Source: Mytilus edulis (Eukaryota). Taken from it: a DNA stretch of 64,000 nt. The DNA lies in contig NC_092349.1 in NCBI RefSeq assembly GCF_963676685.1, forward strand, positions 4,030,001-4,094,000, in the 5' to 3' direction. Shown here one piece after another: positions 2,172 through 6,828 of this stretch. Positions within the stretch are counted from its first letter, which is position 1. Each line of letters starts with the position of its first letter. The notes under the pieces are model-generated. The model ran no database searches and had not been told where the DNA came from. It saw nothing but the letters and a program-made list of their open reading frames with translations. The translations under genes and the position numbers were made by a program.

Positions 2172-5100
2172 TTACATAGCATATACTCGTGTCCATTCCG
2201 CTGCTGTTTCGTCGTATTTTTTCCTATCTGATATATATAAATGTGCAGCTTCTGATTCATGTGAATCATAAGGAAAGGGAGAACTCATTAACGCTGTTAT
2301 ACTTAGTAATACTGAAATAGAAAGTCAAATCATGAATGAAATGTTAAACAAATACTGTATTTTAGATATATTTCAAGTTTGAAGTTACTAGCATTTTGGT
2401 TTAACATTGGTCAAGAGGACTATTCAATATTATAATTTATACAAGTTATTAAATGTATTCATACAATTTCGAAATATGACGTTCTTATTTCCCTTTGTTA
2501 ACAAAGTCGTGTTTTTAATAAGCTCAAAATATATTTGACACATGAGAAAGAGAGAGAGACCTTTAAGTAGTTATAACTAAAAACTTACAAAGCAAATAAG
2601 ACAGTGAACAAAACATTACATAGTAACAAAATCATGGAGCAACCTGACGCACAGCAGAACAGGGACTGCTTCACTAGATACACCCGCCGTGAAGCTTTTG
2701 GTCAAAACATTGATGAGTCACACCAGTAGAAGAGAGGCGAAGGAAACCATAGGATCATAAGAAAAATACCTTGTTTATGAATGGACATGTCTAACTCGTT
2801 TAACTCTTACTCATGGACATAAGTACTTTCTTAAACCCGAAACCTGACCAAATAGGGAGTTTAAAATGAAAAATATGTTTTTAGAACTAATACCAGTAGA
2901 AACATTAGCATTTTCAAATAAAGAGTACAAAATACAGAACTGAATACAAGAGTAAAACGAAACACATTTAAACACACCAAAAATGATCCGATAGGGTAAG
3001 CAGTGAGTCCTGTTCCACTAACGCCACTAGATGTCGTTTCGCTAATGACACTCGACTTTTGATTTTGTTCTTTCCTTGGTTATTGGATACACATATATAT
3101 AGTATTTCGATAGGATTTCTGTTTTGTGATATGTAATCATGTAAAATGTTGAGCGTAAAAATTTATCAAGTATGTTGTTTCAAATAAGTTTATTCATCAT
3201 AAAGCAGAAATCATATATTGATATACAATGTAATGATAACATTTTATTAAAAAAGTTTTGTTTCCTATGTTGAAACTTAACCAAATATTTAAGCCCACCA
3301 TATTCTATATGTGACTTTCCAAAATCAGTACCCTGTACCCTCAGTGGTTGCCGTTGTTTGCTGCCTGTCATATTTGTATTTTTTTTTATAACTTTGTCAC
3401 AGATTAGGCTGTTGTTTTTTCTCTCGTTTAAATTCATAAACATACCTGTTACGTAGGTGTCTTTAGCTGACTATACGATATTGAATTTGCTAGTTTTTGA
3501 CGGCCGTATGGCAACCTTATAGTTGTTTAAATTTACTTAATTTGGACCCTGTTTGCTAGTTGTCGCATTGGCAATCATTTCACATTATCCCAATTTTATA
3601 TCTTACTTGCTGATATACTTAAAGCTGGCGACCAATCTGAATACAGTATATTCAAAAATACTTCTCCTGAGTTCCGATCAATATTTGGATGATAAATTTT
3701 TGTGGTAAATTTAACCTGAAATCAGAAAAAGAAGACAATTTAAAGAACTATTACTAAAAACTAATGGTAGCATCTCTTCTATAATTTTCACAATACATGT
3801 TTATTGTTACCATAATGAAAGGCAGTTTTGATTAAAAATTTGTCATTTTGATATTTTCTAATACATTTAAGCAAACTACTTTAATGTTGTAAAATGCAAG
3901 TTGAATATCATATTAAAAAGACATCTACATTCATAAAACAAATAAAAGTAGAATAAGCAAACTTACATTTGGTGGTTTCATAGGATAACCACGAGGAATC
4001 AATATAAGTAAGAAGAATACTCCTCCATAGTATGGACTTTCATCCTGTAACAATAAATTAAAATTGGGTTGATGCCACTGATGGTGGAGTGTTTATTCGT
4101 CTAGGGTATCACCAGCCAAGTAATCAGCTCTTTTATGTTGACATGAGTTATCATTGATATGGTCATAATTATGAACTAAATGTAAACAAAACTTTGAATT
4201 TTTGAAATACTTCACAAATGCTTTTTTTTACCTCAGGAATAGATTACCTTAGCTGTATTTGGCCAAAAACAAAAAGGGAAAAGAGAATTGGTGGTCCTCA
4301 ATGCTCTTCAATTCGACCTTTTTTCCCCATTCAAACGCCACTTATGAGTCTTTTGTAGACGAAACGCGCGTCATTAATTGAGTAATACGATAAATCTTTG
4401 TGAAAATAGAAAAAATGATTGATACTTCTTATATTTCCTTCCGTAGTCTATTTCGAAAAAAATAAGGGGTACAGAACATCTGACGAAATTGACTCTTTAA
4501 ACATCGGTTGAACAATTTAATCAGTTACTATTATCAAGGTGAAATCAAACAACTCAATGATCAAAATTAGTCTTTTTCAAATTGTTATACATCCATCCAA
4601 ATAATTCCTGTAAATTGTGTGGTTTACATTTTTTTTTTGGTCACCAAGTCAATGTAAATATTTCATCTAAGTTTTATGAAAATTAAACGAGCCAAATCTA
4701 TTTTCGTCAAAGTGTTGGGTACCCCCGTTAAAAGGGTTGTCCATTTACGATTCCTTTACGGAATAAATCATTTCAAGTTTATGTATGATAAAGTCTATAC
4801 TCACTGGTCCGGTTATCGTTCCTTGCCATGTGCATACTGAAAATACAACAAAACAAATCTTATATTTTTTTCGTTGGGTTCATGTCTCATTGAAGTGTAC
4901 ACAAAAATCTCATTTTATTCGTGTAACCAACTTATACCCTGTCTTGTATATATTTACATTTGTTTACAAATTCTTATAAAACGCAGTTCTCTAAATTTGA
5001 AAACTGTATGTAATCTTTATTCAATACAGATTCTATCCAGAGGGTAGACAATTCATACGTTATAATTGAAGAATTTAGAGAGAAATCGATCCAATCGTTT

Positions 5101-6828
5101 AGTGCGAAACAGTTCTGATATCGGAACACACACAAAGTTTAAAAGAAGGTTTGTAAATGGCGTTTTTTTACACTCTCATTACAGTCATTGGCTCAACCTT
5201 GTCTATATATGCAAGCTCTGAATGATATTTACAAGATTGTCGTTGGTCATCTCAAAAAGGTTGAGATGACTAATGATAATCTGTTTATCGCTATTTCTCC
5301 TATGAAGACTTTGTTCATTTCATTGACGTGCACTCTTAGTTTTTAGCGATTATTTTTCATATCACTCTACTGAGCTGTGAAAGGAAAGTCAGTAAGATCA
5401 AAGGAATATTTCTTAAAAAACTGTCAATTCATCTATTTTCGTGGGTATAAGTTTTGGTGGATTGAGGAAAATTTGTATTTTTGTGGATATTTGATTTCGT
5501 GGTTTTGTAAATCTCTGCATACAAAGCATATATAAAATGTGTAATTCATTGAACATTTGAATTCGTCGTTCAACTGTATCAATCAAACCCACGAAAGTTG
5601 ATATCCAACGAATAATGATGAATCCACAGTAGCGATAATAGTCTATAACTATTAAAAATCTAGTTTTTAGCTTACTATCCTCGCCGACTATTCCCGCCGA
5701 GCAACCTGGTGGAGGAAATCTTGAAATGTCAAAAAGTTCCTGAAAGAATATTTGCACATCTTATTTATGCAAAATAGGTATATCAATAAATGAAAACAGT
5801 TAGAAACACTGTATAAATAAAAGAGCAACCTATTTATCATTATATAATATTAGATAGAAACACAAAAAATATAAAGAATCGTCATTTGAGGGCAAGTAAA
5901 CGTATAGGTCATTAAGCATGTCTGAAGAAATTGTATTGTTGATATTTATTGTTGTTTAAACGTTTTTGTCTGAGTGAGAATTGTTAAAATGTTTGTGTAT
6001 TTGTCCCAGATACTTCGTATTTTGTAAGATGGACTGAATTGAATTAGCAGATTAAATACTCAAACGAGAAATCAGAAATTTTATCAAGGTTGACAAAAAA
6101 TGCATCGTGACTGCGAAAAGAAAAGACTAAATTTGAATTCCTGTATTTTTTTCACGGTAAGTTTCTGAGTTTACTCGAAGAATTAGAACAATTAAATACA
6201 ATTGATATGAACTGGCTGTTTCTATATTGGCCTTGTTAAAGATTCTCGATCAGCTGTATTAGCACTCGACTCACCAAGTATCTGGCCAAATACAGCTAAA
6301 CTTGAATATATAAAATATATCCAAAATACACCTATAAGTAGTCCTCCGAAGGTTTATGTCATATTCACATTTTTTTCTAATTGTTTAGTTAACGACCCTT
6401 TTGTTTTTTGTTTTTTTTTGTTTTTTTGTTTTTTTGTTTTTTTTTTTTTTTTTTAAAGTTTTCGTCTTTCCATTGAATGCTATGAGATAATATGCAAATG
6501 ATGGAAATGGGAAGTAGAACGTAGATTTTGATGTTCTGATCAAAATTGCACCCTGTCTTAATCAATTATGGATTTTTAGACATAAGAAATTACCGTAATT
6601 TTATTTATCCTTGACATTATATTAGGAAATGAAATATAATAAAAATAAATGTCGTGTGATTGTGTTGTATGTTAATGCAATTTACGGTTTATAATGAAAC
6701 TTACATGTTTTTTTATTGTTGTCTATTACATGTAGGTTACACTATGTATGTTTCATTGTATACAGATGCATATCAGGTTTCGTTAATTATGTTTAATTAA
6801 TTACCTTTTTCAATCGACTCTCCGCCAT
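2172..6828 (-). CDS. UBE2D-like E2 paralog lacking the catalytic cysteine (pseudo-E2), 148 aa, 6 exons: 6805-6828, 5676-5739, 4805-4836, 3967-4044, 3607-3715, 2172-2311
   Basis: Manual splice, all introns GT-AG, exons 24/64/32/78/109/140 nt. Protein [151 protein letters not shown] motifs (YPxKPP, HPNI, WSPAL, EWTRxYA) are present; the Cys86 codon is TTT (3656-3658). Confidence 0.9.
4065..4372 (+). repeat. Retrozyme-family repeat with degenerate hammerhead (CUUAUGA core)
   Basis: Homologous to the copies at 20608-21015 and 53690-54015; ends ...cacttatgagtcttttgtagacgaaacgcgcgtc. Confidence 0.65.

Follow-up and report, generated by a model that had tools for sequence, protein, structure and literature searches.

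A UBE2D-derived gene of Mytilus edulis that lacks the catalytic cysteine and is probably preserved as a non-catalytic pseudo-E2

The DNA analyzed here (the window) is a stretch of 64,000 nucleotides (nt) from the mussel Mytilus edulis, C6:4030001-4094000 of a 1.37-Gb assembly, where C6 is contig NC_092349.1. At 6828-2172, on the minus strand, lies a gene, labeled gene G, for a protein related to the UBE2D (UbcH5) ubiquitin-conjugating enzymes (E2s). The coding sequence comprises 447 nt (148 codons and a stop) in six exons, and all five introns are bounded by GT and AG. At the former catalytic site the protein has VFLN (3661-3650), compared to ICLD in UBE2D, with Phe86 (TTT, 3658-3656) in place of the catalytic cysteine and Asn88 (3652-3650) in place of the aspartate. 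The gate loop, PNPDDPL in UBE2D, reads PFPYDSH, in which the equivalent of Asp117 alone is retained and that of Asn114 is not, and loop 4 is PMKPP rather than PFKPP, with Met at the position of Phe62. The HPN motif (His75-Pro76-Asn77), Ser22, and WSPAL are intact. Judged by its sequence, G thus falls outside the catalytic E2s: it has no catalytic cysteine, its gate loop is altered, and in M. edulis it carries Asn88.

All of these substitutions and retained residues had been described in an earlier reading of the window from its letters alone (the original prediction), and they were confirmed in the sequence. The six GT-AG exons, the 148-residue frame, and the intact HPN motif were likewise confirmed by the exon model and by its identity to the RefSeq protein XP_071178279.1 (P0371), "ubiquitin-conjugating enzyme E2 D4-like" of M. 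edulis. The gene is therefore already annotated, though without any flag that its product is non-catalytic.

On the basis of profile, predicted fold, and the HPN motif, G is a member of the UBC/E2 superfamily. The Pfam profile PF00179 (UQ_con) matched residues 5 to 142 with 147.2 bits (cut-off, 27); it was the only profile reported at E ≤ 0.001, and there was no match to the UEV profile (PF05743). An AlphaFold2 model of G (predicted local distance difference test score, 91.3) had helices at residues 2-15, 100-112, 122-130, and 132-146 and strands at 21-26, 29-38, 49-55, and 66-69, which are all of the UBC elements, including both C-terminal helices (122-130 and 132-146). The model superposed on UBE2D2 (7bol) with a template modeling score of 0.95 at 57% identity. 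The best solved-structure match of the M. galloprovincialis ortholog (P0291) was a UBE2D1 chain, in which catalytic Cys85 aligned with Tyr86 of the ortholog (Phe in the window). A predicted complex of G with mussel ubiquitin (L018:1495-1722) scored 0.17 against a mark of 0.34 and counts neither way. The original prediction had suggested that G is a UEV-like cofactor or decoy from the UBE2D lineage. Derivation from UBE2D and the lack of cysteine were upheld, whereas the suggested role, with its link to Toll-like receptor/K63 signaling, is conjectural. G is outside the UEV family by both descent and architecture, since HPN and the two C-terminal helices are present and UQ_con is its only match.

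The residue at position 86 proved not to be fixed. Fixation of TTT across individuals had been anticipated, but TAT (Tyr) was present in reads and in other assemblies. A second form of G, in contigs of sequencing runs X11 and X5, differed in exon 5 by Phe86Tyr (3657 A>T, TTT to TAT), Asn88Asp (3652 T>C), Tyr91His (3643 A>G), and Asp93Tyr (3637 C>A) and in exon 3 by Thr36Ser and Thr38Ala, together with synonymous changes. These six replacements are exactly those of the M. trossulus protein XP_063396934.1 (P0369; 148 amino acids). The M. galloprovincialis protein VDH90901.1 (P0291; 148 amino acids) has Tyr86, Asp88, His91, and Asn93, and in two older M. edulis models (P0151 and P0370) Tyr86 is the sole difference from G. 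A DNA run of organism C also had Tyr86 and His91 in G, with a divergence (∼1%) that was too shallow for a comparison of exons with introns. The Phe86 allele was present in X2 and X5 as well. Tyr86 is found in other species and in M. edulis contigs and is hence the older state, whereas Phe86 arose later, as an allele of M. edulis. Similarly, the reported change of Asp to Asn holds for M. edulis (Asn88) but is specific to that species, as M. trossulus and M. galloprovincialis have Asp.

Cysteine at position 86 was found in no G allele, read contig, or ortholog from M. edulis, M. galloprovincialis, or M. trossulus, and the possibility raised earlier that TGT might be the codon of most alleles can be set aside. 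An intact 148-residue frame without the cysteine is present in all three species, and Met62 is conserved in all three orthologs. Replacements between the orthologs are concentrated at residues 86-93 and 34-38, with three states at positions 38 (T/A/P) and 93 (D/N/Y).

Transcripts of G were sought in public data. In 19 public runs (nine studies, three organism labels), 50% or more of the words sampled from exon 6 and the 3' untranslated region (UTR) were present; four of these runs were placed on positions 1900-6900 of the window. All of the runs consist of contigs, which give no expression level, strand, or transcript ends, and the status of the runs as RNA was a guess. A 598-nt contig from X2 joined exon 6 and the UTR (2011-2311) to exons 5, 4, 3, and 2 at the predicted sites with zero mismatches. 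The 5-4, 4-3, and 3-2 junctions were also found in X5, which has another organism label, and the 6-5 junction (2311|3607), likewise seen in X2, in X11, which is from another study. Every piece spliced out is bounded by CT and AC, corresponding to GT and AG on the gene strand. Of the five junctions for which RNA evidence had been proposed as a check, four were thus recovered in spliced contigs from two studies; the junction of exons 1 and 2 was not listed in the contigs of the four runs, and 14 letters at the end of the X2 contig were unplaced. The assembly holds no intronless copy of G, which argues that the spliced contigs are RNA; it also holds no second G-like locus. Gene G is expressed and correctly spliced. 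Contigs covering the 3' UTR began at 2011 (X2), 1984 (X11), and 1967 (X5), and an ATTAAA lies at 1871, beyond these contig ends. In each of the four runs, contig depth ranged from the thousands to the hundreds of thousands over 4071-4404, 4572-4738, and 5240-5631, which are repeats of high copy number within introns 2 and 3.

Contigs of X2 and X5 include exon 4, and in contigs of the M. trossulus-type allele from X11 and X5 exon 3 was joined straight to exon 5, skipping the 78 nt of exon 4. Isoforms annotated as "X2" that skip the same exon exist for a neighboring paralog, copy B (P0269), and for M. californianus LOC127712031 (P0070), and the M. trossulus protein includes exon 4; the skipping in G is therefore read as alternative splicing. 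The second read form was also considered as a broken allele or an extra paralog. Both were rejected, because its six listed replacements are those of the M. trossulus protein, which has exon 4, because relatives have annotated exon-4-skipped isoforms, and because there is no second G-like locus in the assembly.

Gene G is part of a tandem array. Exons matching PF00179 cluster on C6 at 3.939-4.053 Mb, and when 100 kb upstream of the window was added, about eight tandem UBE2D-like copies could be modeled over 110 kb, all on the minus strand and G among them (Table 1). The exon structure of the array is that of the canonical mussel UBE2D gene on C9 (24/64/32/78/106/140) with one extra codon after HPNI. 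Three intact copies lack the cysteine: C (Ser), F (Phe/Ser), and G (Tyr/Phe). Proteins from M. edulis (P0376), M. trossulus (P0378), and M. galloprovincialis (P0375 and P0290) all have the serine of copy C; a natural Ser-E2 of this type could form a stable ubiquitin oxyester. In copy F the change of Cys to Phe is accompanied by an 87-nt exon 4 and a six-residue deletion in the gate loop. The ortholog of F in M. coruscus (inside P0296) carries Ser in place of the cysteine and shows the same deletion, which indicates that the Cys-less F lineage is older than the split from that species. Gene H, which neighbors G in the window, has a product (P0367) of the same sequence in M. edulis, M. galloprovincialis, and M. 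trossulus. Between paralogs the introns cannot be aligned, but the exons can, as can the first ∼80 nt of the G 3' UTR (2092-2172) with copies C and D. The duplications that gave rise to the array are therefore old. The last exon of copy A meets a gap of 100 Ns (C6:3939242-3939341), beside which a run of As appears to be frameshifted by a single base. An older M. edulis assembly has yet another member of the array type, in which Tyr stands in place of Cys (EIYLS; P0004; CAG2243257.1). This member has no counterpart in the present assembly, in which its best matches are 47-65% identical, and this suggests presence/absence variation or a difference between assemblies.

Table 1. Positions of gene G, its paralogs, and neighboring features (window coordinates unless preceded by C6)
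Feature	Position	Strand	Description
G exon 1	6828-6805	-	24 nt; ATG and 7 codons (MAESRLKK), GT donor
G exon 2	5739-5676	-	64 nt; Ser22 at 5700-5698
G exon 3	4836-4805	-	32 nt
G exon 4	4044-3967	-	78 nt; PMKPP, Met62 at 3981-3979; omitted in frame from some transcripts
G exon 5	3715-3607	-	109 nt; HPN at 3691-3683, WSPAL at 3634-3620
G exon 6	2311-2172	-	140 nt including stop; gate loop PFPYDSH at 2279-2259 and C-terminal helices
G 3' UTR	1967-2171	-	Minimum extent, as reached by transcript contigs
Gene H	22602-15974	-	ICLD, PNPDDPL, PFKPP; canonical-looking UBE2D-like, same six-exon structure as G
H exons	22602-22579, 20372-20309, 19155-19124, 18715-18638, 17462-17354, 16113-15974	-	
Copy A	C6:3939112-3939400 (last exon)	-	ICLG; exon 6 enters assembly gap, apparent frameshift
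Copy B		-	HLN, Cys-rich insertion; RefSeq isoforms P0272/P0269
Copy C	C6:3985692-3995476	-	Intact, 150 amino acids; Cys to Ser (EISLG); HPN and PDPDDP kept
Copy D		-	Intact; ICEN; P0288
Copy E		-	Fragment
Copy F	C6:4022900-4028221 and window 499-522 (exon 1, MAKFRLQR)	-	Intact, 147 amino acids; HPV, LFLN
Toll-like receptor (TLR)-like open reading frame (ORF)	42860-45451	+	Intact; LRR and TIR; 863 amino acids
LRR-only or interrupted TLR-like copies	47255-49039, 58243-60573, 28047-28694	+	Opposite strand to E2 array
Reverse-transcriptase ORF	60590-62056		After one of the LRR copies
Three long ORFs between G and H	11249-15189	-	One with reverse-transcriptase domain; intergenic retroelement insertion

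Maximum-likelihood trees grouped G with F (bootstrap, 88% with nucleotides and 76% with codons), and the grouping persisted when codons 86 and 88 were masked. A sister relationship of G and H was rejected by approximately unbiased (AU) tests (P = 0.005 to 0.027; P = 0.012 to 0.046 with codons 86 and 88 masked), and an arrangement with F and G paraphyletic was not rejected (P = 0.06 to 0.17). In the original prediction G stood next to an active sister gene. H is indeed adjacent and has the canonical residues, but it is not the sister of G. Inheritance of the FLN motif by G and F from a common ancestor was also considered and rejected, because Phe86 and Asn88 of G are specific to M. edulis and the other species have Tyr86 and Asp88. 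The resemblance between VFLN in G and LFLN in F is, on this comparison, convergent. G derives from the UBE2D lineage and arose by tandem duplication within Mytilus.

Several lines of evidence bear on whether selection has maintained the protein. A comparison of exons 2, 3, and 5 of the edulis-type allele with those of the trossulus-type allele listed six replacement and six silent differences (ratio of replacement to silent change per site [pN/pS], 0.30; P = 0.04), and when unlisted differences were assigned from P0369 the counts were 7 and 10 (pN/pS, 0.21; P = 0.002); these values are based on 12 to 17 differences between two alleles that both lack the cysteine. In a codon model with three branch classes, the ratio of replacement to silent substitution rates (omega) was 0.475 on the G branch, 0.455 on the F branch, and 0.12 in the background. 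An omega of 1 was rejected for F (P = 0.043) and for G and F jointly (P = 0.003). That exons, but not introns, can be aligned between the paralogs also speaks for selection. Neutral drift was simulated from the G or the H sequence, with intactness defined as start codon, frame, stop codon, ten splice dinucleotides, and no frameshift. At most 1.5% of the simulated genes were intact at t = 0.06 per site, which is roughly half of the silent divergence between the two Cys-less G alleles, and fewer than 0.03% at t ≥ 0.12. The intact orthologs, the pN/pS below 1, and the correct splicing together argue that selection still maintains the G protein. Thus, the expectation that the ratio of replacement to silent change would lie below 1 was supported by the allele comparison (0.2-0.3) and by an omega of about 0.5, with neutrality rejected jointly for G and F and borderline for G alone (P = 0.075). 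The view that G is preserved and not a decaying pseudogene was supported by its expression, its intactness in three species, and these ratios. We consider it probable that G is a preserved non-catalytic protein, a lineage-specific pseudo-E2.

Some of the observations weigh against this conclusion. G taken alone was not significantly below an omega of 1 in the three-class model (P = 0.075) or in a two-class model (P = 0.43), in which the omega of G (0.66) was indistinguishable from 1. The protein evolves far faster than that of H: it differs at 10 residues between M. edulis and M. trossulus, whereas H differs at none and, compared with M. californianus, at only 5. Polymorphism (Phe/Tyr) extends to the former catalytic residue, and some transcripts skip exon 4, the product of which would lose a core beta-strand and loop 4, an E3 ubiquitin ligase contact. 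The array holds damaged copies (the fragment E and perhaps A, which is frameshifted beside its gap) and differs by a member from the older M. edulis assembly. A limited search for M. californianus and M. coruscus turned up no protein of the G type. Together with the raised omega of G (0.48-0.66 compared to a background of 0.12-0.14), most of these points would be expected if G were a transcribed duplicate that is drifting toward a pseudogene in a birth-and-death array and has an intact frame only because constraint was lost recently. However, the cysteine had already disappeared in three species, each of which retains the 148-residue frame, the two Cys-less alleles differ with a pN/pS of only 0.2-0.3, neutrality was rejected for G and F jointly, and few simulated genes remained intact even at the minimum age. 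In addition, there is no indel in G relative to H, and splicing is accurate. It therefore seems improbable that G is a pseudogene in the making.

If G is a preserved pseudo-E2, a mode of action can be proposed. An E2 that lacks its cysteine forms no ubiquitin thioester and hence cannot conjugate. With neither Tyr nor Phe at position 86 providing a nucleophile, G would be unable to accept ubiquitin from the activating enzyme (E1), and it would work by binding rather than by catalysis. The most likely targets would be RING, U-box, or HECT E3s, or E1, that normally take UBE2D-type E2s; by occupying them G would titrate them out or divert them, in the manner of engineered UbcH5 mutants that lack the cysteine. 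The scaffold is kept, and so are elements that face E1 and E3, namely Arg5 and Lys8 of helix 1, loop 4 (PMKPP), and SPA of loop 7, and their retention is consistent with continued E1 or E3 contact and hence with a competitor or adaptor. This specific mechanism is possible but tentative. A UEV-like role with Ubc13 is not indicated. Both the cleft (residues 86, 88, 91, and 93, with the gate loop) and strand beta-2 (34, 36, and 38) differ from species to species, and aromatic residues have accumulated in the cleft (Tyr/Phe86, Phe115, Tyr117, His120, and Tyr/His91). The remodeled cleft is possibly a new contact surface; its variability may reflect a new binding surface or merely relaxed constraint.

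A more elaborate alternative is that G and other fast-evolving members of the array are decoys or specificity modules under diversifying selection, with the cleft as an evolving recognition surface. The clustering of ortholog replacements at 86-93 and 34-38, with several sites in three states, and the raised omega of G, F, and D could be explained in this way, but clustering at former functional surfaces is equally expected from relaxed constraint, and on present sequences we regard such diversification as unlikely. Decoys of this type might, for example, trap pathogen effectors that hijack UBE2D or tune an expanded RING E3 and TLR signaling in bivalve immunity. A cluster of TLR-like genes lies ∼20 kb from the array, whose transcription runs in the direction away from that cluster; adjacency is no evidence of a functional link, and we hold these immune roles to be equally doubtful. 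In its widest form, the proposal would make the C6 array a set of Mytilus-specific, UBE2D-derived binding modules, three of which lost the nucleophile differently (Ser, Phe/Ser, and Tyr/Phe) and were kept by selection, with the diversifying cleft of G serving as a natural inhibitor or decoy of RING/HECT ligases or pathogen effectors in an immune ubiquitin network beside an expanding TLR cluster; we offer this as speculation with a low chance of being correct. Very improbable is a further explanation, that G still conjugates ubiquitin via another residue, either Tyr86 or another cysteine. HPN and the aspartate at the Asp117-equivalent position are kept, and the protein contains Cys21 and Cys31, but the UBC fold puts both cysteines a long way from the active site, Asp87 and the gate loop are changed, and the Phe allele has no nucleophile at position 86. 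Tyrosine esters are not known as intermediates of E2s.

G can be compared with several known systems. With UBE2D/UbcH5 (human UBE2D2 and the mussel C9 gene) it shares the fold, intron positions, and exon lengths (24/64/32/78/106-109/140), as well as HPN, Ser22, the SPA loop, and the C-terminal helices. It differs in the change of Cys to Tyr/Phe, in Asp87 to Asn (in this allele), in the gate loop PFPYDSH, in Phe62 to Met, and in the extra residue after HPNI, which is common to the whole C6 array and absent from UBE2D. The UEVs Mms2/UEV1A, which are cofactors of Ubc13, and Tsg101 are Cys-less UBC-like folds that bind ubiquitin or E2 (PMC7215765, PMC12513931). UEV families are ancient and separate and are without HPN and the two C-terminal helices (PMC4481407). 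G is likewise Cys-less but retains HPN and the helices and has a recent UBE2D origin within Mytilus. Arabidopsis COP10 and Drosophila Peo/mammalian AKTIP lack the cysteine and have a full UBC domain with C-terminal helices. Their roles are non-catalytic: COP10 is an enhancer of E2 activity, and Peo/AKTIP function at telomeres (PMC7215765, PMC4481407). Their origins and partners are unrelated to those of G, Peo has HPH where G has HPN, and G is young, fast-evolving, and tandemly arrayed.

UbcH5 proteins in which Cys85 has been mutated (C85A, C85S, and C85K) retain E3 binding and serve as dominant negatives or as stable mimics of the conjugate. Structures of Cys85 mutants have been solved (C85E in PDB 9gls and C85K in 9yea). 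These engineered proteins have the same scaffold as G with the nucleophile replaced and otherwise wild-type surfaces, whereas G is also changed in the cleft and loop 4. Literature searches on expansion of E2/UBE2D or on pseudo-E2s in Mytilus or bivalves found nothing relevant. Cys-less UBC proteins are an already known kind (Mms2/UEV1A, Tsg101, COP10, and AKTIP/Peo), of which G is a new, young, and lineage-specific case for which the material for comparison is unusually good.

The pseudo-enzymes of the ubiquitin system (Mms2/UEV1A, Tsg101, COP10, and AKTIP) are few, ancient, and important as regulators. G is young and comes from the most promiscuous E2 family, and with 57-62% identity to its active parent and the same exons, the steps from enzyme to binder can be read. 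The Tyr and Phe alleles, together with neighbors that have Ser or Cys, form a mutational series provided by nature, with which one can ask whether a UbcH5 without its cysteine inhibits, enhances, or re-targets E3s in vivo. From the automated label "E2 D4-like" one would not learn that catalysis has been lost. Until a partner or phenotype is found, G will be of modest practical value.

Outside the E2 array, the window contains the TLR-like and retroelement sequences given in Table 1. Elsewhere in the assembly, the canonical UBE2D gene (C9:35951206-35964603, plus strand; 35.95 Mb) has three consecutive alternative last exons, each with its own stop, which suggests mutually exclusive 3' exons. 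A full-length, intronless UBE2D copy, probably a retrogene, with an intact frame and the cysteine occurs twice, at C1:81378091-81378516 on a chromosome and at C1170:23333-23758 on an unplaced contig. In two unrelated proteins with multiple UBC domains (P0002 and P0003), the first domain has the cysteine and later domains do not, and one of the two has AIFLN, so the paired change of Cys to Phe and Asp to Asn arose elsewhere too.

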